DNA from: Monocercomonoides exilis PA203 | Taxonomy: Eukaryota > Protista > Preaxostyla | NCBI GenBank assembly: GCA_001643675.2 | Contig: LSRY02000011.1 | Span: 806,001 to 870,000 of the forward strand | DNA: 64,000 nucleotides | Direction of reading: 5' to 3' | In this document: in pieces, positions 3,001 through 30,100 of the stretch | How positions within the stretch are numbered: position 1 is the stretch's first letter | Layout of the letters: the number at the start of each line of letters is the position of its first letter | Program-made: the position numbers and the translations under genes | Notes under the pieces: model-generated | What the model saw: only the letters and a program-made list of their open reading frames with translations | The model's database searches: none | Told to the model about the DNA's origin: nothing

Positions 3001-6000
3001 TCACAATGAATGATGCATTTGTGGGGAAGGATATGTTCATCCGGTGCAAGTGGATTGAAAAGCAGATCAATGAAACGCTGTTCTCGCTGGACTTCAGCCA
3101 GGATGCTCTGAAGTTGAACAACTCGATTTGTGGAAGCGATGAAGAGAATAGAGATATTGATCTGGTTCCGCTGATCACATTCTATTATGGCCAGCAGGTG
3201 TTTGTGGAAGCAAATGGGAGGGATATCAGACAGTGTGGAGAGCAGACGAATCCTTGCAAAAGCATCAGCCACGGGGTGTCTCACATTCAAAAGGGGATCA
3301 TGAATGCGATTTTTATTGATGGAGAAGGGGACATTGGAGGAGAGTGTGTGATGGGAGATGTGAGTGTGAAGCCAATGAAGAAGGTGAAAGCAACAATCCA
3401 TTTCAATGCAACTGTTCAAGAGATGGGAAATGAAGGGAACATGATCGCGTTTGTGAATGAGTGTGTTGTGGAGAGGTGTGTGTTTGAGTTTGGAGAACAG
3501 TTTTCATCGAGTCACAGCTGCATTATGAAAGTGAAGAACGGGACAACAGAGATGAGGGAGTGCGAATGCTTGTCATCCACATTTGTGTTGACCATTCACA
3601 GCACAATAATGGGAGTTGAGGGAGGAGAGCTGGAGATGGTCAAGTGTGTGTTCACGAGAATGAAATTGTCTGTGCCTTTGATTGAATTCATTGGGGAATC
3701 GAAAGCAGCCATATCAGAAACAAAAATAGATGATTTCGAATCGGAGGGAAATGTGATTGAAATTGGAGACAGAGCAGAAGTGGAGATGAAGGAGTTGGAT
3801 GTTCAGAACATCACTCTCTCAAGGAGTGGAAGTGCTGTGCATATGCAGAATTTGGTGAAGAACGAGGTTTTATCGAACTGTTCATTTGGAAAGTGTTTGA
3901 GCTCAAAGGAGAAAGGATCGATTGTTTCGGTGAGCAATTGTGCCAATGTGAGGTTTGATCTGTGTAGGTTCTCTGGGGATTTGGAGGAAGAAGCAAGAGA
4001 AGAAAGGAAAGCAAATGAAAGAACAGAAGAGGTTTGCAAGTGGAAAGGATCAGTTGTGGATGCCATTTCAAGCAGTCTGACAATGAAATACACCACAATC
4101 AGCAACTCGAAGAAAGGAGGGCTCTCTTTGTCAGGCGGAAGTTTTGTTATTGAGAAGGGAGAATTCGAGAACAACAACCCATCGGTTGAGGGATATCCAT
4201 CATTGAGAAGAAACATCATCTGTGCAGATTCGGGAACATTGAACGTGATGAGTTTGAAAGGGGGAGACGGTGTGTTACCAAACACATCATTTTGGATATT
4301 GGATGAAGGATGTCAATTTGGAGGGATTGCAGCTGAAAGAGCGTCCCCTTTCTTTATTCCTGTTCTTGAAGATGTAAAGAATACAACTCAGCCATCAGGC
4401 GAGTTGGAGTTGATCATTCATGGGAAGCTGCTTCTGCCGTGTGATTTGTCAGTGAAGATAAGCATGAAAAATGGAGATGAAGAGGAGATCATGAGAAAGG
4501 GAATTGACGAAGAAGACTGTGTATCAGAGAATGAAGTCCATTCAACAATTTATTTGGAATTGCTCAAAGTGATGGAAACCAAAGCTGAAGTGAGCATGTG
4601 CATTCTGTTTGGAAAAGCTGATTCTCCTTCATCAACTGAGTCTTTCATTCTGAAGAATAGAAGTGAAAGTGTTGGAAAAGGAGATGATAGAATTGCTGAA
4701 GGAGGAAAAGAAGGGAAATCTTATTGGTTGTTGATTGTTTGCGTTGCGATTGTGGTAATGTTGTTAATTGCATCCATTATATTCATTGTTCGATGGAAGA
4801 AGGTGAAGGAAAGAAACGAGGAGTTGCAAGAGATTGTGAATGATAACATCAGAAAAGATCCAAAACTGATTGAGATGGTGACGATGGAGATGTCACCTGA
4901 GGAACAGTGGAGGAGAGCAGAAAGGGAGACAGAGAAGAAAAACGAAGAGAGGATCAAGAAGAGGGTGTATGAGAAAAGCTTGGGACATTCCGAATCCTCA
5001 GAACATCTGCTGTCTGAGAGTGGATCAACAGAATATATTCTGGGGAAGGACTCAGACAAGATCCCCGAATGGGTACTGGAGAAAGATGAAGAAGAAGAGA
5101 TAAGGAAGAGAACACCATCTCCATCGATCTCATCCTCTTCAACAACTGATTCAGATTCAACTTTTGTTCGGAGAGAGGACTTGTGCCCAACCACTTCATC
5201 GATGTCAAATCTGGTGGATGCGATGGCATGCTCTTCGCCTCATGAGAAGCTGATTGTGGATCTGAGGGATTCTCTGTTCATGCTGCTTCATGGAAGGAAC
5301 GAGAAGAAGGAGATGGCAATAGGAAGTTTGCAGGAGAGGGAGGTGACAGCAGCGCAGATCCTGTTCTGGGTGGCAAATGGAGCACTTCATTCGTTTGATG
5401 AAATGGAAATTCCACTTCAATCACTGGCAAATCTGAGTCCGCATATTGTGCTATTCTCAGAACATATGGTCATTTGCATCGTGATGCATTCAGACCTTTT
5501 ATCAGATGATTCTGATTCTTCTTCTATCTCTTCATCAACCGTTGTGACATCTGCAAGTGATGATGAAAGTGACTCTCTTCCCTCCTCTGCGTTTGAGGAA
5601 GAGAACGAATTCAAAAAAGAGTGTTTGAGATGGAAGGCGCCTGAGCAGCAGATGAACAAGAAGATGGAAGCAACAAAGGAGTCAGTTGTGTTTTCGATTG
5701 GGATGATGCTGTGGGAGTGCCTGACACTGCAGATCCCGTTTGGGGAGTATGATGCGGAGACGGCTGGGCAGAAGATTGTCCATGGAGAAAGACCAGATGT
5801 GAAGAAGATGGAAAGCGTGAAGTTTGAAGATATTGCGAGGAGCTGCTTGATGAGTGCTGGAGAAGACAGGCCGAGGCTTGTTGATGTTCGTCGTATGATG
5901 TTTGAGAGGATGCCTGGGGCAGCCATGCTGATCACTCAGTCGGATGCCATATGCGACAGCGATGATGGATGCGGAGGAGACAACAATGACGGAGGCAGAG

Positions 6001-15356: not shown

Positions 15357-17102
15357 CTATACAATATTAATATGAGACAAACTGTATGAAGCTCTGATAT
15401 TTTGAGCCCCGCCAGATCCAACCATCGCAACAGGAATTCCTCCAGCACGAGTTGAACTGAAAGGAGGAAGAACAAAAGTGCCATCTCCAGCACCACTTCC
15501 GCTTATGCCAGAAGAAGAAGAAGATGATGATGACGACGAAACGAACGAATATGATTGAGACACATCAACCTCTCCTCGCTTCTTTTTGCCTCTGCTTTCG
15601 TTTTCTCTTCCACGTTCAGTCAACGAGCCCAGCCCAAACGACTGCTTCTTCCCCACTCCACTTCCTCCTCCGCTTCCGCCCCCCATCCCCAAACCCAACC
15701 CCATGCCCATTCCTTCTGACTCGCCATACACTTCTCTTCCACCTCCCACACCACCTCCGCCTCTCGTTCCTCGTGCTGTTCTCCTTGGCGATGCTATCGT
15801 CATGATTGACCGCTCTGTCTTGTCCCCACGCTCTCCTTGTGCAGCTCCCCGCGTCGAACCCCGCGGCGTGCCTATTACTCCAGTGCGCTCGCTCTTCTCC
15901 CTCGCCATCGAAAGCGACGGAATGTTCATTCCTGAATACGCGCCTTGCCCAATCAGCGACGACTTCATAGAAAGTGATGCTGTGGACGCTGTGACAGATG
16001 ATGAAGGACCTGTTGGAGGAAGCTGTGATACATACGACGAGCGGAATGATTGCTGCGTTTGATACTGCTGCGACCCAACCCCGCTGCTTCCAAAAGACTG
16101 GCCCGACGCCGTCTGCACAGGAGAAGACGACTGATTAGGCACAATGACTGAAAAAGAAGGTGAAGTGGCTGTCTGCCCTATCAGCACTTTGCCTGTTTGT
16201 GTGGTGTGTTTCGGAGTCGGACGAGAGCCTTTTCGTTCTGCGGTGGCCAAACCGTCTCTCGGTGGCTGTGGTGGAGGAAGATAATGGCCAGAATAAGTGG
16301 GTTGGTCAGATCGCTCATTGCAATTATTGTTTGCTGTTGAAGAAGAAGAAGAAGATGATGATGACGAAGAAGATGTGCTTGAACTTGAAGAAGAAGAAGA
16401 AGAAGATACAAACACAGAAGGCGAATCTACATCTGCGGTTCTCACTTGCCCGCCTGATGCATTGACAGCTGTCTGTGAAGAAGACGTTGTCGAAGAAATC
16501 GACGACAGATTCACAGTGTTCTGTGCCGTCTTTCGCGGAGTCGTTGCCACAGTGGAGATAGTTGAGGAGAACGTTGACTGGCTGAATCCTCCTCCTATCG
16601 AAGTGGTCTGAGCATTTGAAGCAGAAGAGGAAGGAGACGAGAATGTCGAAGACTCTGTCGATGAAGTGGAAGTGGATGGTGCAATGCCAGTGGCTGAAGG
16701 GAGCTTGTTAGACGTGGTGATGGAAGACGTGGAGGATGTGTGAGGGTTTGTGGTGGATGAGGAAATAGAAGAAGAAGAAGATGATGATGATAATGAAGCA
16801 TATGAATTTGACATTGTGGATGGTTTTGATGATGTTGAAGAAGACGTGAAAGTGGCAGGTGGAAGAGCGGTGTGTGGGTGCAGGCTGTATGCTGCTGATG
16901 CACGATATGATCGTGATGGGTCAGCTGTTGAAGGGCCAAGATGAGACTTTTATTAAAGTTCATAACAGAAAACAATAAATATTATTATAGTAATAATGAA
17001 TAAAAAGTGAATAAATTAAATACAGGAATAAAAATATTGAAAAATTATTAAAAAAGAAGAAAACAAATATTAATTAAATGTTAACAACAACAACAACAAC
17101 AA

Positions 17103-17155
<53 letters not shown>

Positions 17156-18596
17156 ACTGTAAAAATAATAAACATACTCCAATTATCCAAGGGTGCTGCA
17201 TGGCCTGGTCAGGCTTAAACCTGTCTTTTGGATTCCATCTTAAGCATCCCTCCACAAACGAGATAAACAGCGGATCTGCTCCCCGCAGCACGCTCTGCAG
17301 ATCCTTCGAGTTAGGCCTGCGCCTTTTCCCCTGTGAGTTCGGCACAATTCTCGGGTTGTTGTGCGAGTCGAAGAAGTGCTTCTTTCTCGAAGATTGCTCA
17401 ATCAGCTGAATGGGAGGGACACCAATAACCTCCATGATGCACGCCAGCTGCTCCACCTCGTCTTCGCCAGGAAATATCGGGTAACCCGTAAACAGCTCAC
17501 ACAAAATACACCCCAATGACCACATGTCAATTGCGCAGTCGTAGCCAAACCCCAATATCACCTCGGGCGCTCGATAAAAACGTGACTGAATATACGAATA
17601 GATTCGCTCGTTCACAAAGCATGACGAGCCGAAGTCGATAACCTTGATGCCTGATTTGTTTGGGTTCTTGAGAAGAATGTTTTCTGGCTTCAGATCACAG
17701 TGAATGATGCGATGTTTGTAGAGATAAGACAAAGATTGCAGAATTTGAATTGCAAAGCGTCGAATAAGTGATGTGGATAGTGATACAAAGTTAGCCTCCT
17801 TCATGAACTCATACAAGTTTATTGATAGCAGCTCGAAAGTCAAACACAAATGCCCACGAAAATAGAAGAAATCATACATTCTAACGTTATTCATTCTATC
17901 TTCTGGATCGTTGTCCCTGATATATTCTAAAAGCTTAACTTCCACAAGGCCTTGCCGATGAAATCGTTTTTTGTTTCTAATGACCTTCAATGCGCAATAA
18001 GTGTTATGCTTATGGTCCAGAACCCTTACACATTGCCCAAACGATCCTTTTCCAAGTACTTCCACAATCTCATATCGATAAAGCACATGATCATTAAGAT
18101 ACATTCTATAATCACCATTTTCATCATCATATCCACAATTATTTGCATGAGCAGGATTTGCATGAATTTTCTTTTTTGAACGTTGACCGAAATAAAACAC
18201 TTGCGGAAACTCAAGAATTTCACCGTGCTCATACAGCGTCAAATCACGAGCAAAATGCTTTAAAACGAATGTAGGCTTCATTGGGCCTTTCGCTTCAGGT
18301 GTTTGTGATTGTGTATTTGGAGACGCAGGCTGAGAAATTAATCGAGAAAGGCTTGGCGACTGGCGAGGTGTTGAAACAGCTGTTACTGCAGGAGACGAAG
18401 CTAATTACATTAACAACAATATATAAAAAAGTTTGAAGAATTTTATAGTTTATTGTGAAGATTGAAGTGCATGAAAAGAAATATCAATTATTATCGAACA
18501 TTTTACATTTGTCATAAGCACAGCCGAATTCTGTTCTGCTGATGTGTAATCATGAGCGTAATTATTAATAGCAACTCTTGTTCCAGAATCCGCCAT
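15357..18596 (-). CDS. DYRK2: Dual-specificity tyrosine-phosphorylation-regulated kinase, class 2 (DYRK2-like), with long Ser/Gly-rich C-terminal tail; ~969 aa, 3 exons
   Basis: DH box NCGYDDENGDY, GKGSFGQC, ALKVIRNKKRFHRQG, HCDLKPENILL, DFGSSC, and YxY activation loop IYSYIQSRFYRAPE. Exons 18596-18500, 18400-17178 and 16946-15357 are joined by phase-compatible GT-AG introns. Confidence 0.9.
17085..17154. repeat. (AAC)n microsatellite plus A49 tract within DYRK intron 2
   Basis: Directly visible. It explains the poly-F/poly-L end of ORF 17070-18281. Confidence 0.9.
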
Positions 18597-18803
18597 GATT
18601 CCCCTTGAATTCTTATTTGAAAATTTTTATTGAAAACGAATACCCATACTTATATCATCAACATTTAAAATACCAAAATTTCAAAGTGTAAAAATTATTC
18701 TCGGTGAATTCTACAGTTTATTTAAGTCAAGGATTTAATAAAAACAATTTTTTATTGACAGAAATTCATTCATTGGTACAAAAAAAATAAATTTATAAAA
18801 ATG

Positions 18804-20943
18804 TTATTTTTTGCTTTCTTCTTCCCATCCTTCTTCAGTCTTCCACACCCCTTCTTCTTTATGATCCTTATTCTTTTCTTTCTCTTTTGGAATTGTTCCC
18901 TCAAGTTTACCTTTTACATTCATCCAACAACGATGAAAGTCTTCTTTCATCATGAGAGTTGAATCAACTTTTAGCATTTCTTCCATGTCTGCTTTTGCTT
19001 CTTCGTCTCTATCAACCATCGCATACAGAAGCTGCCTGTTATGAAGTGCCTTCATCCGATAGCGTTGCCTCAGATATCGCAGCCCCAGCGCTTCCGTGCA
19101 CGCTTTAATCCCCTTTTCGATTGGAGTCTCTTTGAATTCCTCAACAACTTTCGCCAGTTTCACACAGCACACAGCAACGTTTGTCAGAATCACTTCCTTG
19201 GCTGCACACACACACTCCTGGACGCTGTGATAAAGCTCTGTTTTTTCTGGGGTTGGCAGATCTTTCGGGTGAAGTGGCTTTTGCATTTGATTGGCTTTTG
19301 ATTCAGTTGCTTCATCTTTGTCATTCTTTTGCTTGTCTTCATCCTGCTCCTCTTCTTTTGTCCTTTCGCGCTGGAGTTTGTAGTATTCGTTTCTTTCCTT
19401 TCTGAGCTTCTTTATTTTATCATAGTACTCCTTCCATTCATCTCCGCACCACAGCTCCCAGTTGTCAAACATCCTCATTGCTTTGTAATATGATGCAAGT
19501 GCTTTGCGTGGGGCTGTGTCAATTTGCTTGTTCCCTGCGTCTTTCTCAACCCGGGCAGCAATAAGTGCATCTCTCAATGTGATGTCCTTTGGCAGCACAA
19601 CAGAAGGAACGAAGTCATTGTCACTTGAATGTGAAGGATCAGAAGGATCTGAAGAAGAAGATGATGAAGCCACATCTTCTGAATTCTCCTCTGATTCTTT
19701 TTTCTCCTTCTTCATTGTCGAGTCTGGCTCAGTCAACACGCCAATATGTGGAATCCAGTCAACAAGCTTTATTTTGAATGTGATCCATTTGTCTCTCTCT
19801 TCTTCTGGGTATTCACCTCCATTTCCGATGGACTCATAAGCAAGCGACGGACTCACAATAAACAGAGACTCTTCGCCTTTCCTCATTCCTTCAACCAACT
19901 GCATGATAAGTTCAGTGATGCAGTCTGAGCCTCGAATCGGCTTGCCCAGGTATCCTGCTGATGTGGACATTGAAACTGAAGAAGAGGAAGAAGATGATGA
20001 TGAGTTTTTGTCGAAATGTCTTGGAGGTTGAACGTATTTGACAACTTCATCTTTTCCAATCGTGAAAATTAACCGCCTTGATGAAGTGAAGAACTCGGTA
20101 AGATGAATGAACACCTCAGAAAATGGCGTAGGCATACGCGGATCGCTGAATTGGCAGCGGAATGCCTTTGCAGTGAATAGTTCGCTCGTTTTGATTGCTG
20201 ATGACTCCGGCGGAGTTGCTATTTGAGCTCCTGGTATCAACACTCTCTTCAATACGCTACCATCTCCGGTGTACAATTCGTATCCGCGAGGGAGATATAC
20301 TGGAGATTGAACAAACATGTCAAATCCGAAGCTATCACTTGTTATAACATCTTTTGACGAAGATGAAGTGGATGATGAAGATTCATGTTCATCAGAAGAA
20401 GTAGAAAGCCCCCGAAGTTTAGCAAGAGCACTTTTCACATATTTTTCATTAGAATAAGTTTCTTCAAATTCTTTTGTAAATTCATCTTCTTCAACACCAG
20501 CTGCATCAATCAAATCTTTTTCATCCACAGTTCTGAACAACTCGCCTTTGGCAGAAGTTATCCCTGTAAATGGAGTAATTCTTTTTACTCGAAACTCTGG
20601 TTGATCATCGACTTGCAAAACTTTGGACTTCTTTAAGATCTGGAAAAAAGTTAAACAGATTAATTTTTATCTCCAAAAACTGAAGGAAAAACAAAGAGGC
20701 ATACGTTAAATACTTCTTGTGCATCAGTTGTTATTGAATGAAGTTTTGGATAACTTATGAGTTTTGATATTGTTATCCATCCTGGAAAGAAAGTAATAAA
20801 GAAATTCAAATATTAAAAATCAAACCATCGTTATTTTTCAAAATATCCATTGTAAATTCATCCTTTGCGAGATTTTTATCTCCTAAATAATGTTCCACAA
20901 GAGACAAAATGTCTTCTTCTCTCAAAACATCAGAATTACTCAT
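18804..20943 (-). CDS. La motif - FKBP-type domain - TPR fusion protein; ~676 aa, 3 exons
   Basis: Exons 20943-20826, 20781-20705 and 20639-18804 (introns 44 and 65 nt, GT-AG, phases 1 and 0). Spliced N-terminus MSNSDVLREEDILSLVEHYLGDKNLAKDEFTMDILKNNDGWITISKLISYPKLHSITTDAQEVFNILKKSKVLQVDDQPEFRVKRITPF is a La motif. FKBP motifs: GDGSVLKRVLIPG, GMRKGEESLFIVSPSLAY, ITFKIKLVDW. TPR motifs: EKDAGN..ALASYYKA, LTNVAVCCVKL, KALHNR..EAKADMEEMLKVD. Confidence 0.85.
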
Positions 20944-21100
20944 ATGTGACAAAAATTATGTGAAAAAGATCAGAATAATGAAATAAGTTTTTATTTTTTC
21001 TTTTTTCAAAGCAATAATTCACAAAAATACAAAAATACGACAAAACATAAAACACTATAGATATAAAATTTATTAAACAAATTTGGATTTATACATATAT

Positions 21101-24100
21101 TTACCAAGTTAAAATGCAATCTTCATCATCCAGCAACATTGCCTTCATCCTATCATAGTCACATGTCCGAGCATAACTCACCATCTTTCCCCATATTGTA
21201 TTGTTATCTAATTCTTCGTATTCTCTAATGAAGTTCAGCATCAGCTCCTGTGTTATGCTCCCTGGTGTATTGTGTATCTGTACATCCAGCCCGCTCCTCG
21301 ACATCAGCCAGAATATCTTCACCAGCTCTTCGCAGTCATCAGCAGGCGCATACGGCAGCACATGTTCTTTCACCGTCGCCTGGAGCTCCTGCATCCGCGT
21401 TGACAGGTAGTGCACGGTGCCTCCCGATATCACCGCCTCGTTCGCAGGCACTGACCTGCCGAAGTCGATGATGAACGCCTCTTCCTTCGCTGTCCCTTCT
21501 TGCAGCAGCACAAGATGATCCATTCGAATGTTCCTGTGCACTCTGTGCTGTGCGTGCATCACCTGCAGCATGGTAATCATATCGAACATGTGCTTCCCCA
21601 AGTGCGGCGACGTCCACGGCCACGACTTGCCCACCGGTGCACACACAAGAATGCGGTTCAGCTCTTCCCAGCAGACAAACGAATTGGCATGGGGCACACC
21701 CGAATCCATCATTGTCTGCAGCACAATGATTTCATTCATCAGCTCCTCTGTCTTCGCATCCATGTACACTTTGAACGAGCAAGGAACCATCGTCCCGCTC
21801 TCGTGAACCTGCTTGCGAAGCCAAGAAAGCGAAGACGTCTGCATCTCCGTTGGTTTTTCCTCTTTCCCTTCTTCTCTTTCTTCTTTTTCTTCATTGCCAT
21901 TTTTGTTCTTATTCTTCTTCTTTTTCTCCTCCACCTCACCAACTAAACAATAGCTCTTCTTCCCATACCCCACAATATCTACAAACGTAAACCTAAGCCC
22001 ACACAGCTCACACCGAGGAATATACCCAAAGAAAGACGGTGGCTGATTCAAAATCCACGAAAAATTCGCAAAGCTCGTCTCATCACTAAAAGGCCTCTGC
22101 GATCCATACACAACCGCACACGCGTTTCTGTGTCTATAAGCCACAAACACCTGATAGTAGAACGGGGTCATGGCGATGGTGACGGCGTAGTAGCGCCACG
22201 ACTGCTGCTGCAGGAAGCGCTGGGCGTGGCTGACGGCCTCGGCTGTCTGCTCGGCCGTGAGCTTCTTGCGGCTGGCGATGTAATAGTCGCTGATGTCATC
22301 AGTGGTGGATGGGATTGACTGGAGCATTGAATGGGTCAATGTGTGTGTGCGGCAGGTGTGTGTGCGAGGAGGGAGTGGGGTGGAGGAGAAGAGGGAGCTT
22401 ACTTTGGGGATTGGGCGATCAGGAGAAATGGAAGGAGAAGGAGAGGAAGAAGGAGAGGAAGAGGAAGATGATGGAGAAGGAGAAGAAGAATTTGCTGGAG
22501 TTGCAGGTGAAGGTTTTGTGACCATTTTTGAGAGTATCTGACGCTGCTGCCGAGATGTGGATGGAATTCGGATGGGTATTTTGGCGTTGTGTCCCAGAGG
22601 TGAAAGATCGAAGTCAAAAACTGTGATTTCTTTCTTCTGCTCTTCAAGCTTTTTGATTTTCCGCCATTCTTCGTCTCCAAACTTCTCTGCTGTTGATGAA
22701 GAAGAATGTGAAGAAGTTTTTTCATCATTTTCACAACTTTCACAATTCTCTTTTTTCTCCTCATTCTTCATCTCTTTCTCTTTCTCCTCTTTCTTCTCCC
22801 CTCTCTTCCTCTTTGTCTTCGTCCAGAAGAAGTCAAAAATCGTCACATGATCCCTCGATCCACCTAATCCACCTGAGCATGGCTCAATCGACGCCACAAG
22901 TGTTGGCGTGAAGTTTCCAATGAAGATTCCGACTTCAGAGCAGATGCTGAGATACAAATGGCCATACGGCTGAGATGTTACGCACATTGGACGGTTGGCG
23001 GCTGTGAGGGAGCTGAGGGATGGCTTAGAGGAAGAAGAGGAAGAGGGAGAAGAGGATAAGTTAGAAGAAGAAGATGAAGAAGACATAGACGAAGAGTAAG
23101 AAGGCAAAGGAGAAGAAGTCACTGAATTTGAAGGAGAAGAGGAAGAAGGTGTATTTGACTTTGGCAAAGCTGGAGAATGTGGTAAAGACGCATTCACAGG
23201 CCCAACTGATGATGATGACTGCAGAGCAGCAGAAGCAACCTGATCAATCAGCTGAGGAACAGTCGGCTGCTGTTGAAGCTGAAGTTGCTGTTGCTGATAC
23301 TGCTGCTGTTTTTGATTCAACAAGCCAACCGACCCATTCGAAAAAGCAGCGCTTCCATTTGCCTGTGCAAAGTGGTTCTTCACAAAGGGGACGCTGTGTG
23401 ACTCGAACCACTTGCTCTGCTCAGACGGCGTTTTCAAGGCGAAAGAAGAAGGAAGCAGATCAACTGGCAGAGGAGAAGGCTCAGAACGAGCAAAGGAAGA
23501 AAGCGGAAGAGAAGGAGAATCTGCGCCTTTTGTTTTTAAATTGAGAGATTCGTCCAGTTGGAAGAGGGGGATGTACGTTGGGTTGTACTTGATGGTGTTT
23601 TGGATAGGAGCTGGGTTTGGATTTGTTGCTTGTTTCTTTGAGGTGTCCTTTTTGTGCTTTGAAGAAGAAGAAGAGGAAGAAGAGGCTTTTGAACTGCCTA
23701 CACCTTCAAACCGAGAGCGATCAGCTTTTCTGTCTGGCAGAATCTTTGAGAGAAGAGAGGATAAAGGCGAAGCATTGCCAGACTTATTGCTGTTGTCACT
23801 GGAATCTGAGGAAGAAAAGGAAGAGGAAGAGGAAGAAGAAGAAGAAGCAGAAACAGAAGGCAGTGATAGCAAGCTCTTCTTCTTTGACCCCCACTGTTTC
23901 GACGACGGTGATGAGATGCCATCAAAAGGCGACACTTTGCTGTGTGAGCTGCTTGTCTGCTGGATTCTTCTGTCTCTTCTCGATTTGCTTGCTCCTTCAG
24001 CTAAGTTATTACTACCACAACTGCCACTGCCATTGCCACTTCCGCTGCTTCTTCTGAGGTGCTCTGGCAGATCGTCTTCAGACGCGACGGTGAAGTTTGT

Positions 24101-27100
24101 GTGTTTCGGGTTCGACATCAGCAGCACAGCAGGAGGAATAGCAGAAGTGTCTGGGATGGGTAGAGAAGAAGGGGTGTGATCATCATCATCGTCATCATCA
24201 TCTCTTCTGCTCGATGAGAAACCAGAGGCAAACCCTCCACTTTGCATATGCTGCAGCGAAAGAGAAAGCGAAAGCGAAGACGCACCGACTGAGGCGGCAG
24301 CACGGAATTTGATGTACATTGCCTCTTTCTCTTCGTCTGATGTGCCATAAATGCACAAGCGATGACAAGCATTGGCTCGATACCGCTTGGGCGAAGGGCC
24401 GTATTGAAAGCGCTTAAGCTCTTCATTGTGCAGCGCGATTTCTTCCTCTTTCTTCACTTTCTCCTCTTCCATCTCCTTCGCCCTCTTCTTCTCTCTCTCT
24501 TTGATCCGCTCCAGCTGCTGCTTCAGCTTCAATCTTTCCTTCTCTGCCTCAAAAAGCTGTTTGTTCCTCTCATCAACTGTCATTTTTCCCCTTCGCTTCT
24601 TCTTCTTTTTCTTCTGCGCAATATACGCAGACCCCATCCCATCAGCTGCCTTTCGGGCCATCGAAAACAATCTGATAGCTTGCCCTTCTGTGTCAAAGAA
24701 CTCTTCGTCTCTGTGGGAAAACTTGAAGGTGTCCTGGAAGTCCATGTATTGCTCCCAGGCCTCGTGGTAGTAGGTAAGGGAGTAAGGCATCGGGCGCAGA
24801 GGAGGCGATTCTACAACAAGCGGAGGAGATGGGGTGATTGGGATGCTGTCTGGATCAGTGGAAGAAGAAGAAGAAGAAGAAGATGATGATGATGAAGAAA
24901 TAGGTGATGATGTTGTTGGATCACCATTTAAATATGATGAAATATCTGTTGAATTCATTTCCTCTGAGCCATTCGGATGCAGCGGCTGTGGTTTTGACAA
25001 CAAAAGTAAATTCCCATTGGCATTAGCAGAAGTAATTTCACTTGCCTGCTCCTTCTGAACAGTGTTTGAAGCTTCAGGCATCAGAATCTGTGGCGGTTCG
25101 TCCATTAAGCACGAAGCATCAGCTGTTTGATTGGAGCTTATTGCTTCTGCTTCTGTTAATGTTGAATATGGCGAGCGCAAAGACGAGAAAAGGGTTTTCT
25201 TCTGTTTTTGGTTGAGAAGCCTGCTGTTAACCTTCCCATTTCCTGAAATGTTGTTACTATTCGATTCTTCTGTGCTTTTGGAATCAACATCAGCTCCTTC
25301 ATTCCCACTCTGCTTCATCTTCTGCTTCTGCTTCTGCTTCTCTTTTTCCTCCTCTTCTTCCAACCTCACTTTCTCGTTGTACTCTTTTATCCTCGCATCT
25401 CCTTCAATCAGCTCCACCTGCCTCGACAGCGCCACAAGATGTGCCAGCGACTCCTCAATTTCTCTGTTCTTTGGCGGCTGAAGTGGAATTGAAGGGTCAA
25501 AATAGCCAATCAGCGTGTCTTCAGAGGGAACAAACGGACGCAGACTGCGAGGCTTGAATCTTTGGGATGGTTGTGGAGACTGGGGAGAAGAAGAAGAAGA
25601 AGAGGATGAAGAGGAAGAGGAAGAAGAAAGTGGGCTGTTAGATGATTGAGTAACATTAGTTGTGGCAAAAGTGACTTTTTTATCTTTGCTGTTATTATTA
25701 TTATTATTAATGCAAGCATTGTTCTGTATATTGATTGAATCCTTATTATCACTACAAGTCTCTTTCCCCTCTCCTTTCTCCCCTTCTTCTTCTTCTTCTC
25801 CTCCTTCTCCTCCTTCTTCTTCCTCTTCATCGTCCATTTTCTTCACCTCTCCTTTCGCCTCCTCCGCCACCATCTTCCTAATCTCCCTGTCATCCAATAT
25901 CTCCTTCATCTGCCCCCATCTCGAACCAGACTCTGCTTTTCCTCCATCCAATCCATCTGGATCGATATATGGCATTTCCCCTGTATCGTGGAATAGGTTG
26001 TCATCAAGCTCTTCTTCTTCAGTTGCTGCTTCTTCATTTAATTGTTCAATTTGCTCTTTTTCTTTTTCTTTTTCTTTCTCTCCTGTCCCTTCAGTCAAAT
26101 TCCCTTTCTCCTTCGCATCATTCCCTTCCTTCTGTGCTTCCTGCTTCTGCCGTTCTAAATCCTCCTTTTCCTTCTTCAATTTGTTCTCCCTCTCTCTTCT
26201 CAGCCGCTCCGCCTTCATTCTTTCTTCTCTCTCTCTCCTCTCCATATTCGCAATCGCATTCTTCTCCCTCTCCTTCTTCATCGCCTTCTCTTTCTCCTTC
26301 TCCTCCCACCGTTTCACCTCCTTCGCTATCTCTTCTTCCCTCTCTTCTCCATAATTCCCTTCCACCTTTGGAACCAGAAACGGAACAAGCTTCTTTATCG
26401 GCCCGTTGAACTTGACAGTTTTCTCGTCCAAGCAGCAAAAGACGGCTGTGTTTGACGATTTTTTCATAGGCGACCAGCCATTCATCAGGCAAATGAACAA
26501 CATCAGAGCAGAAACAGCGTATTTGTTCTCTTCCACTGTTGGGATACCATTTTTGCTGTCTTCCTCTTCTTTTCGCTGGGATTCGAGAAACTCGGCTTCA
26601 GAATCACTGGAGTTGGAAGAGAAATTTTTTGAGGTTTGTTTTGGTTGATTCTTGTGCTTGTGATGTTTGTGTTTGGTGTCAAAGATAAGAGAAGAAGAAG
26701 AAGAAGAGGAGGAGGAGGAGGAAATGTTTTCATTATCATCTTCTTCAGATGAAGACGATGAAGAAGAAGATTCAGCTGAAGATTCGTCTTCATCATCATC
26801 GTCATCATCATCTTCTTCTTCATTCTCTCTGAACACAAGTTCCTTGTCTGGCTCTGCTATTTCTCTATTTGCACTCATCTTTTTATCTTCCCCTTTTCTG
26901 TTTTCTGTTTTTCCTTCTTTTTCTCCTTTAACATTCTTCTTTTGTGTCTCTTTTTGAGACAATTTCGATTTTTGAATTGGCACATTTCCTTCTTTTCTTA
27001 AGAATTTCCTTTTGTTATCTTCTTCTTCTTCTTCCTCATCATCATAATCTTCTTCTTTTCTGTTTCTTTTATCTCCATTTCCCTTTTTTTTCATTCCCAG

Positions 27101-30100
27101 CAGCGGTTGCAGTGATCCTATTGATTCTAGATCTGCATTCAATTTATCTTCTTCTCTTTCTCCTCCTCCTTCTTCTCTTTCTTCTTCACTTACTTCATCA
27201 TATAAACCATCCACTTCTTTCAACGAATCTTTTCTTTGCTCCAATGAAGATCGCTTGCGTTCTTCTTCTTCTTCTTCTTCTTCCTCTTCCTCTTCTTCTT
27301 TCTTCTTTTTCGCTTCTTCCTCTTTCTTCCTCTTCCTCTCTTCTCTTCTCTTCCTCCTCTCTTCCTTCTCCTTCTCCTTCCCTTCCATCTTCTTCTCTTC
27401 CTCTCTCTTCCTCATCATCTCCTTGTTCGCTTTCTCCCTCTCCTTCTCCTTAATCTTCGCTTGCCTCTCTTCCAACAATCTAACTTTCCTTTTCACTTCC
27501 ATTTCTTCCATCGCTCCTTCCAACAGCCTCAGAAACATAAACGACTGCGGATGGTAATGCCCGCCAAACATGAAGTGGCCTGGCTTCTTGTATATTCTAT
27601 CCACACGCGAGGGAGGTAAGTCCAAGTTCCTCTGGTCCCACGAGGCGTGGAAGTAAGTTTCGAAGCGGGACGGGTAGAACGGGATTGGGGTGGAGAGATA
27701 GACAGGAGGAGGGTTGAGGACAAGAGGGTGGGCTTTGGGTTGGGAGGAGGAAGAGGAGGAGGAAGGAGAAGAGGACGAAGAAGTTGATGAAGGTGTAACA
27801 TCACTACAAGAATTCTGATTAAATGTTACATTTTTCTCATTTGAACACTCATTCTGTTGTTTCTGCTTCATCTTTGCCATCAGCTCTTGGAGATTGTCGC
27901 ACACTCCAACACTTGCTGCGCCCACTTCACCAGGGGCGCCTATGTTGTGTGAAGGGAATTTTGGTTTGTTTGAGGATAAAATAGAAGAAGAGGATGAGGT
28001 TGAAGAGGAAGAGGAAGAAGATTGTGATGGTGATGAAGAGGAAGAGGAAGCGGAAGAAGAGGAAGAAGAAGGAAAGAAAGAAGTTGATGGAGTTGTGGAT
28101 GAAGTGGCAGATAGAGAATTTGAAGTGGACGTCTTTGAATCAGAAGATGAAATGTCAGAATGTGTTTGCGATGATGATAAAGCCGAATCCGAAGCTGAAG
28201 GAACACAAGAAGAAGAAGAAGAAGAAGACGAAGAAGAAGCAAAAGGAGCATCATTCACAACAGCACCACCACCACCACCACCACCCTCCCCTCCTTTCTG
28301 CACCACCACCATCGCATTCGTCTGCTGCATCTGCAGTGGAGACGGCGCAATCACCTTTGTTGTCGGAGTAATAACCTTCGGCTTTGCGATCTGATCAATC
28401 GAGAGCTTCAGTCTTGTTGGCGTGAAGTTCCTCAGAGTGAATGTGGGCTTAGCAATTTCGTCTCTGTCGAGGGTGAGCGACCTGGCGGCGATGACAAGTG
28501 AGTCCTCTCTGGTTGACAAGGGCACTGTCAGCTTCGCCTTCCACTTCTTCTTCGCCCGCTCGCGCCGCTGGCTGCGCCGGGTGATGGCGGGGAGGCTGTT
28601 GGTGTTGGTGGAGTCGGGGTGGGTGGTTTTTGAAGAGAGGGAAGAAGTATTGGTATTATTAGTATTATTAGTATTAGTATTATTAGAGCTGTTATCATTA
28701 CTGCTATTGTTATTGCTATTGCTATTTGTGTAGAAGTCGTCATCTTCAAATGATTCATCGGATGAATTGTCCACAATCAAGTCAATATACTCCCTTTCAC
28801 TCAGTCTCCTCTTCCCAATCTCAATTGCTCTTTCTTTGCCTTCTGCACTCCCTCTCATTTTCTGGGTTTTTCTGCTTCGGCTGTTGGCTTCGTCATTTCC
28901 GCCTTCGTCACTTTCTCTAAATGACCCCAAACTGTTTCCTGAATCATCATAGAAGTCATCGTCTTCTTCGCTGTCGTAATCACTTCCGCTGTAATTATCG
29001 TCATCTTCTTCTTCGTCGTCATCATAACAATCATCTGTACCATCTGCTCCATCAGAATCACTTGATTTGTAATCCATTCTTCTTCCACTTCTTCTTCCCC
29101 CCACTCTTCCTCTTCCTCTTCTCCTTCTCCGCCTTCTCTGCCTTCTCCCTTTATCTGCTCTCCTCCTCTTCAACTTCTCAATCCTCTCCACTCTCTTCTT
29201 CTCTGCCTGCCTCTCGTCCTCTTCTGTCAGCATGCGAAATTCTCTCTTCCTGTCAGGAAACTCGAACTCCAGCACAACCACCAGCCGCTGCGCCTCAAAC
29301 GAGTCCTGCGGGTCCTCAATCATCTGCAGGAATTTGATCAGCTCGCCTTTCAAAACAGGCTCCACACGCAATTTGCACAGCTGCCTGATCAGAAGCAGTA
29401 CAGGGCGCACAAACTCTGTTGCCAGGAGATCGCAGTCACACTCAGTGAGAAGCACCTCGACACATTCAGACAGGTCGGGTGCCCCCTTTTGAGGGAAGGA
29501 CGAGACACACTCCAGAAGAGTCTCTATCAGAAGGAGGATGCTTGAGCGGACGTGGGGATCAGAGGCCTGTGGAAAGAGGAGGAGGAAGAAGAAGAAGAAG
29601 AAGAAGAAGAATTAGAATAGATAGATGGATATCCAAATATATACATCAATTCACACATTCATTTAAATTCATAAAACCAGATTACAAAAAATAACATCAG
29701 GGAAATGCTTTAGCACACCATGTATTGAAAAAGCAATCTGAAATACATCAATGTGAACATGGAATAATTCTCTCGACGAGGAAAAATTCCATATGACACT
29801 GTTTCATCACGATATCTACCGCTTACAAACAATCGCCCTTTTTGCTCAGAATTTTGAAATGGAAACATTTGAATTCCACCATGAGGAATGGGAACTCGCT
29901 CTGGAAGAGTTAAATGAATTGTTGCTTTTTGCAGAAATGGCCAGAAAAATGACTTCAAAAACAAAACAATGCAAAAATAAAAAAACAATCTTGGTAAATA
30001 AAAAATGAAGCATACAAATGCGTGTGGATATTTTAAACTTATACGGCATAAAACTACTTCAAGCAGGCGATAGTCAACAAAAAGTGGAAGATCAGGAGAT

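Follow-up and report, generated by a model that had tools for sequence, protein, structure and literature searches.

A three-exon gene with La, FKBP-like and TPR parts

The stretch of DNA analysed here, called the window in what follows, comprises 64,000 nucleotides of the genome of the mitochondrion-less protist Monocercomonoides exilis PA203 (contig C5, positions 806001-870000; our genome scan covers 82.3 Mb in 101 contigs). On its minus strand, between positions 18804 and 20943, lies an expressed three-exon gene coding for a protein of approximately 676 residues, in which a La motif, a linker, an FKBP-like domain and a tetratricopeptide repeat (TPR) domain follow one another. An earlier reading of the same letters, referred to below as the original prediction, had joined two small 5' exons to a long open reading frame (ORF), and had seen in the product a La RNA-binding motif fused to an FKBP-TPR protein of the Hsp90 co-chaperone type. 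The parts of the gene, together with what each assignment rests on, are listed here in the order of transcription.

20826-20943, minus strand: exon 1, with the ATG at 20943-20941, 39 codons and one further base, which opens a Gly codon split by intron 1; codes for the N-terminal half of the La motif (translation, Pfam La match, alignment to human La, RNA contigs covering 20825-20925).
20782-20825, minus strand: intron 1, 44 nt, GT..AG, phase 1; absent from RNA contigs of runs X1 and X4; a paralog has an intron at the identical place and phase, and on metagenomic contig L017 an unspliced insert interrupts the sequence there.
20705-20781, minus strand: exon 2, 77 nt; middle of the La motif, with the W-I-T-I-S-K-L... 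stretch and F55 changed to Y (translation, tiling on La motifs); the equivalent exon of the paralog matches positions 31-53 of the Pfam La profile.
20640-20704, minus strand: intron 2, 65 nt, GT..AG, phase 0; absent from RNA contigs of runs X1, X3 and X4; a paralog intron lies at the identical position.
18804-20639, minus strand: exon 3, 611 codons and a TAA stop, made up of the following parts.
20571-20639, minus strand: exon-3 residues 1-23, C-terminal end of the La motif, matched by alignment to the closing helix and strand of this motif in a Blattamonas homolog (P0001) and in a single-exon La-motif gene (L014), and to human La via the P0001 alignment.
20301-20570, minus strand: exon-3 residues 24-113, linker with a family-conserved acidic motif and a Ser-rich stretch; no RRM match, low model confidence.
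19740-20300, minus strand: exon-3 residues 114-300, FKBP-like domain with a family-specific insert after strand 1 and a poly-Ser insert (Pfam FKBP_C, wheat FKBP73, hhalign, alignment, model).
19587-19739, minus strand: exon-3 residues 301-351, acidic Ser-rich low-complexity linker (translation; predicted local distance difference test, pLDDT, below 50).
18882-19586, minus strand: exon-3 residues 352-586, TPR-like domain with three TPR pairs and a capping helix; a long charged helical insert separates TPR1 from TPR2 (model, Foldseek, hhalign).
18804-18881, minus strand: charged C-terminal tail, with the TAA at 18804-18806 (translation).

The evidence for transcription consists of assembled RNA contigs from four metatranscriptome runs, all belonging to one study, which were aligned to window positions 18700-21100. 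Contigs from three of the runs (X1, X3 and X4) lack exactly the 65 nt of 20640-20704, while the 44-nt intron is missing from those of X1 and X4. In particular, a 427-nt contig of X4 (record 19) holds 250 nt of exon 3 (20390-20639), exon 2 (20705-20780) and 101 nt of exon 1 (20825-20925) in one piece. Contaminating DNA could not have given rise to spliced contigs; the splice model is thereby confirmed, and the two GT..AG introns turn out to lie where the original prediction had placed them, spliced in phase. The predicted length also agrees with the codon count of the three exons: namely, 39, 25 and 611 codons and the split Gly codon add up to 676. What had been described as hidden 5' exons are real and spliced, and it was from an ORF track only that they were hidden. 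The contigs end 16-18 nt before the ATG, and the start codon is therefore inferred, being the first ATG of the open frame; within exon 3, the first Met comes approximately 110 codons in, inside a conserved region.

A joint and loose ends at 19647-19719, 20359-20382 and 20483-20500 were considered as isoforms and rejected, as they consist only of 18-24-nt low-complexity matches of long unrelated RNA contigs (2.7-5.2 kb).

The three domains and their pockets

Profile searches and folding of the window gene were done exon by exon, which matters most for the La motif, split as it is over three exons. Exon 1 alone matches the Pfam La profile (PF05383) over positions 1-27 of 59 with 21.8 bits and an E value of 1.7e-4, a score which stays under the whole-domain cut-off because the exon holds only part of the domain; when intron 1 is read through, as in the genome scan, the match extends over positions 2-47 and rises to 27.8 bits. 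HMMER aligns exon 1 to residues 14-41 of human La. What is more, when the products of exons 1 and 2 and residues 1-23 of exon 3 are set against the full La motifs of the Blattamonas homolog and of the single-exon LARP at L014, they tile them from end to end, colinearly and without overlap. Together, the profile match and the tiling bear out the La motif of some 85 residues that had been read from the 5' exons. As for an RRM, which had been said not to be evident, Pfam finds none in exon 3 at E values up to 10, and the approximately 90 mostly low-complexity residues between the La motif and the FKBP-like domain are too few to hold one. The La motif is of the genuine-La type and has no RRM after it.

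The pocket by which La holds RNA 3' ends is formed in human La by Q20, Y23, Y24, D33, F35 and F55; D33 reads the 3'-OH, and Y24, D33 and F35 contact the terminal nucleotide in La structures. The window copy keeps these last three, and has Leu in place of Q20, His in place of Y23 and Tyr in place of F55. The HMMER alignment to human La and the family alignment give identical states at all six positions, which are also those of the original prediction. With the 3'-OH-reading Asp and two aromatics retained and three other residues lost, the RNA specificity of this copy probably differs from UUU-3'OH. A paralog on contig C15 (locus L013), in which all six pocket residues are kept, is the better candidate for classic La-type binding; its exon 1 alone reaches 42.1 bits against Pfam La, above the cut-off.

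For the FKBP-like domain, exon 3 matches Pfam FKBP_C (PF00254) with 23.9 bits (cut-off 21.1), in the C-terminal half only (profile positions 50-94); among solved structures, wheat FKBP73 is nearest to it in sequence (E 1.5e-3). M. exilis also has many ordinary FKBPs, including at least three canonical FKBP-TPR genes; hhalign aligns the family profile with the profile of the canonical M. exilis FKBP-TPR proteins at a probability of 96.8% (E 2.7e-10), over 221 colinear columns running from FKBP strand 2 to the third TPR. In FKBP12 numbering, the pocket for FK506 binding and peptidyl-prolyl isomerase (PPIase) activity consists of Y26, F36, D37, V55, I56, W59, Y82 and F99. By alignment and hhalign, the window protein keeps only the equivalents of Y82 and F99 (possibly also those of F46 and F48), those of Y26, F36, D37 and W59 being replaced or deleted, whereas this genome's canonical FKBPs retain the FKBP12 pocket residues in the same alignments. 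These comparisons show the loss of most of the PPIase/FK506 pocket and, at the level of sequence, support the view of the original prediction that the domain looks catalytically degenerate. An insert of approximately 36 residues, specific to the family, follows FKBP strand 1, and there is a poly-Ser insert as well.

In a first model of the whole of exon 3, the FKBP-like part stayed under pLDDT 50. A second model, of this part as a single domain and from a wider alignment, has a predicted template modelling score (pTM) of 0.58 and a core pLDDT of 70-92. Its best 50 matches in the PDB are all FKBP domains, among them PfFKBP35, FK1 of FKBP51 and FKBP52, FKBP6 and wheat FKBP73, with template modelling (TM) scores by target of 0.56-0.71 for single domains, although these matches are partly circular because canonical FKBPs were in the model's alignment.

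Two short motifs without known counterpart were seen in this part of the protein. The first, E-[DE]-L-[ILM]-D-x-x-G, lies in the acidic linker after the La motif (window 20301-20570, minus strand), and the second, T-S-x-[LI]-F ... P-T-x-x-S-x-V, in the insert between FKBP strands 1 and 2 (window 20150-20260, minus strand). Both are also present in the C15 paralog, in P0001 and on L017.

Pfam finds no TPR in exon 3, and the domain is visible only by structure and profile comparison. Namely, exon-3 residues 352-586 are confidently helical in the model (pLDDT 70-94), and the top PDB matches found with Foldseek are Cyp40, FKBP52, FKBP51, XAP2/AIP, Cpr7, FKBP38, the TPR domain of PfFKBP35 and TPR1 of RPAP3, with TM scores by target of up to 0.79. 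Several of these structures were solved with the Hsp90 MEEVD peptide, and the hhalign alignment is colinear through TPR3. The two-carboxylate clamp that holds such peptides is defined in TPR1 of Hop by K8, N12, N43, K73 and R77. K366, N370, N487 and K530 are present in the window protein, so that the K, N, N and K positions which the original prediction had named are indeed kept; the equivalent of R77 is N534. Taken together, the model and the alignments show a predicted three-repeat TPR domain with a capping helix, of the Hsp90/Hsp70 co-chaperone type, in which four of the five carboxylate-clamp residues are retained.

Relatives of the gene

The fused gene is not a singleton, but its relatives are few. 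The C15 paralog repeats the order of La, FKBP-like and TPR-like parts, and both introns of the window gene have counterparts in it, alike in position and phase. An exhaustive HMMER search with exon 3 of 1.84 billion representative proteins returned three relatives only. One is BLNAU_284 (P0001), a protein of 745 residues from the oxymonad Blattamonas nauphoetae, whose La motif scores 36.3 bits against Pfam La (E 5e-9, cut-off 37.1) and has the human La motif as its closest solved relative (E 3.8e-8); in public databases this protein is entered under a La-domain name given automatically, and neither FKBP nor TPR is annotated. The remaining two are fragments out of a single metagenome of the Joint Genome Institute (JGI). 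The first of them (contig L017) has a La motif with an unspliced insert at the site of intron 1, followed by the FKBP-like domain in two halves and by the TPR part, as in the window gene; the second (contig L016) is cut at its 5' end. A La motif is present, in other words, in all four members whose 5' end is available. In the tree, the five members group together with 100/100 support and separately from the canonical FKBP-TPR genes; the branching within the group is not resolved, including which of the two M. exilis paralogs is the Blattamonas orthologue. As judged from the tree and the alignments, they make up a small family, seen so far only in oxymonads, that branched from ordinary FKBP-TPR immunophilins.

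Other routes to relatives added little. Word-indexed homolog searches with exon 3 or with the family alignment gave nothing, probably because low-complexity words filled their candidate lists, and P0001 found only itself. A metagenome pattern scan with a further alignment (A5) matched 267 sites and yielded no relatives. In a protein atlas, the ten named clusters nearest to Blattamonas P0001 (and not to the window protein) all combine FKBP_C with TPR, including FKBP6/Shutdown and AIP/AIPL1, and none has a La motif; with scores of 0.86-0.87, this is to be taken as a lead only.

The genome contains further La motifs. A genuine La gene, with La motif and RRM, lies on contig C36 (L015, approximately 3330-4032, minus strand), and has a phase-1 intron in the Trp codon of its La motif, which lies one codon further downstream than intron 1 of the fused genes and is in the same phase. 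This is suggestive only of a derivation of the La exons from the genuine La gene by exon shuffling; the intron match is inexact, and we do not claim such an origin. On contig C29, the L014 gene (3092-3460, minus strand) has a single-exon, fully canonical La motif of 74.5 bits, followed by an apparent RRM start, and weaker La matches lie on C24 and C51.

In the window itself, the gene is flanked on the same strand by two ORFs. Upstream, at 21101-29455 (minus strand), there is an ORF of 2784 codons, mostly of Ser-, Glu- and Lys-rich low complexity, with a kinase-like C-terminal region; RNA contigs cover 20980-21100, which would be its 3' untranslated region (UTR). Downstream, at 17070-18281 (minus strand), lies the ORF of a DYRK-like protein kinase, whose 3' end runs into a poly-Phe/poly-Leu stretch that is probably an intron or UTR read through.

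A candidate chaperone adaptor

What might a protein of this build do? The reading that we favour is that of an adaptor. The La motif would hold an RNA 3' end or a ribonucleoprotein (RNP), the TPR domain would dock the C-terminal tail of Hsp90 (MEQVD) or of Hsp70 (IEEVD), and the FKBP-like domain would serve, without catalysis, as a scaffold or as a surface for clients, as in FKBP6, AIP or FK2 of FKBP51; in this way, the protein would bring a chaperone to an RNA-protein complex under assembly or remodelling. We regard it as an even question whether the protein really combines an RNA or RNP held by its La motif, a chaperone held by its TPR clamp and a dead FKBP as scaffold.

The tails needed for such docking are present in the organism. 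All three cytosolic copies of Hsp90 (L019-L021, on C47, C6 and C51) end in MEQVD, where MEEVD is the usual C-terminus, and three copies of Hsp70 (L029-L031, on C74, C36 and C11) end in IEEVD. We modelled the TPR region (exon-3 residues 345-592) together with the last 45 residues of M. exilis Hsp90. In all three runs the complex scored 0.72 (best control 0.02); the runs agreed in at least 68% of their contacts, and the partner pLDDT was at least 49. Of solved complexes, 51 of 78 reach that mark, and of mismatched pairs, 2 of 108. The predicted contacts join N370, N487, K530 and N534 to Hsp90 residues 740-745, in the canonical clamp groove. It should be noted, though, that TPR-MEEVD complexes are well represented among solved structures and that the partner is disordered, and therefore the pass indicates likeness to such complexes rather than binding, and does not discriminate between Hsp90 and Hsp70. 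Of the RNA-tethered Hsp90 adaptor for RNP assembly that the original prediction proposed, the chaperone end gains support in silico from the predicted docking of the Hsp90 tail. Hsp70 is equally plausible as the partner, and the RNA end is a possibility only, with half of the canonical pocket changed.

A number of further points weigh against an adaptor role. The complex score may stem from the model's memory of solved TPR-MEEVD complexes, and a disordered peptide is a class of partner outside the calibration of the test; the FKBP fold matches, as already said, are partly circular. At the fifth clamp position, the Arg is replaced by Asn, Met or His across the family, and at the RNA end, three of the six La pocket residues are replaced in the window copy. 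The Blattamonas member has lost four of the six pocket residues, with only D33 and F35 kept, as well as all four of the clamp residues that the other four members of the family retain, and therefore neither activity is universal in the family.

According to the main rival, the protein could be a divergent FKBP-TPR co-chaperone in which the La motif of the window copy no longer binds RNA and is kept as a structural or protein-binding winged helix, the link to RNA, if any, being made only by the C15 paralog. The loss of Q20, Y23 and F55 in the window copy, the still greater degeneration of the Blattamonas pocket and the lack of an RRM to complete a La module all speak for such a loss of RNA binding. 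On the other side, the contacts to the terminal nucleotide (Y24, D33 and F35) are precisely what the window copy has preserved, and the motif itself has been retained in all four members with an available 5' end. Precedents divide in the same manner: Slf1 and Sro9 need their solo La motifs for RNA binding, but the motifs do not suffice for it (PMC7928011), which favours the loss and counts against an adaptor, whereas the La motif of LARP1 binds RNA without an adjoining RRM (PMC11259064). On balance, we consider this explanation possible, but rather unlikely.

Alternatively, the protein could bind RNA as proposed, with its TPR domain holding some other partner, for instance a protein of RNPs or a different acidic C-terminus; in that case the FKBP-TPR part would serve as a generic scaffold, and no chaperone would be recruited. 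The missing fifth clamp residue, the want of a Pfam TPR match, the large family-specific helical insert between TPR1 and TPR2 and the absence of a clamp in Blattamonas all fit such a partner. In addition, TPR domains of the AIP type also bind non-chaperone tails, as in PDB entry 4apo with its Tomm20 peptide, which is among the fold matches. Nevertheless, four clamp residues are kept in four of the five members, the nearest solved folds are Hsp90-binding TPR domains, and the complex model clearly exceeds its controls, so that we hold a partner of this kind to be improbable. Finally, that the gene model is an artefact, in which the La exons come from a different transcript or lie in an untranslated leader while the protein starts within the big ORF, is effectively refuted and deserves hardly any credence: the RNA contigs do stop short of the ATG and come as assemblies from a single study, but single contigs join exons 1, 2 and 3 in frame, the first ATG of exon 3 comes only some 110 codons in, inside the conserved region, and the paralog and other species share the three-exon layout and the La motif.

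How does the adaptor that we propose compare with systems already known? The TPR immunophilins (FKBP51/FKBP52, PfFKBP35 and wheat FKBP73, and Cyp40/Cpr7) provide the best sequence, profile and fold matches of the window protein, and their FKBP members share with it an FKBP domain followed by a three-repeat TPR with a carboxylate clamp, the Hsp90 tail being predicted to lie in the same groove. The window protein differs from them in its N-terminal La motif, its largely replaced PPIase pocket, the absence of the fifth clamp residue, its two FKBP inserts and its long TPR insert, as well as in belonging to a clade separate from the canonical FKBP-TPR genes of its own genome. A second group are the inactive adaptors FKBP6/Shutdown, AIP (XAP2)/AIPL1 and FKBP38, in which a degenerate FKBP-like domain and an Hsp90-binding TPR domain serve as a client adaptor, and which appear among the fold matches (3b7x, 7zub_C and 5mgx) and among the atlas neighbours of P0001. 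FKBP6/Shutdown, in particular, works with Hsp90 in small-RNA RNP loading. None of these proteins, however, has an RNA-binding domain of its own, and the likeness shown is one of fold and domain order.

From the side of RNA, the family's La motif is closest, among solved structures, to that of human La (tested on the Blattamonas member), and the C15 paralog keeps all six residues of the 3'-end pocket. Unlike La and LARP1, 4, 6 and 7, the window protein lacks the RRM that would complete a La module, as well as DM15, PAM2, SUZ-C and xRRM, and it has FKBP-like and TPR domains as partners instead. A survey of 345 La-motif proteins from 135 species by Deragon lists genuine La, LARP1, 4, 6 and 7 and an odd alveolate La/DUF3223 (PMC7928011), and FKBP is absent from its text. 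The alveolate protein and the solo-La LARP1 proteins Slf1 and Sro9 are similarly lineage-specific, with a La motif that lacks an RRM partner (PMC7928011), but they have other partner domains and no chaperone-binding module. The nearest precedent is mammalian LARP6 with FKBP25 (FKBP3), a La-motif protein that is linked to an FKBP functionally and non-covalently (PMC4813270); here, however, two separate proteins are involved, FKBP25 has no TPR and is an active PPIase, and there is no evolutionary link to the present family. La-motif proteins and TPR immunophilins are each well studied; in the full-text literature searched, a fusion of La with FKBP-TPR was not found described, in agreement with the original prediction, which knew of no such architecture.

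One may go a step further and see in the family an oxymonad-specific class of La-related proteins, in which a pseudo-PPIase and a TPR clamp have taken the place of the RRM, and in which one polypeptide, as a built-in chaperone adaptor for the assembly or remodelling of RNPs, would recognise the 3' end of an RNA and bring in Hsp90 or Hsp70. We offer this broader proposal tentatively, and consider it doubtful that all of it will hold. It should also be kept in mind that the family is tiny and confined to gut protists that are hard to manipulate, and that its function is predicted. Were the proposal true, the family would constitute a sixth, lineage-specific La-related architecture, beside the alveolate La/DUF3223, and a single polypeptide would do what in other eukaryotes takes more than one protein, FKBP6/Shutdown and Hsp90, or LARP6 and FKBP25, being examples. 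The two M. exilis paralogs, one with a canonical and the other with a half-changed RNA pocket, offer a ready comparison for the contribution of the La pocket. Above all, the direct fusion would then be a natural experiment, indicating that Hsp90 or Hsp70 can be aimed at RNPs by way of a reader of RNA 3' ends.

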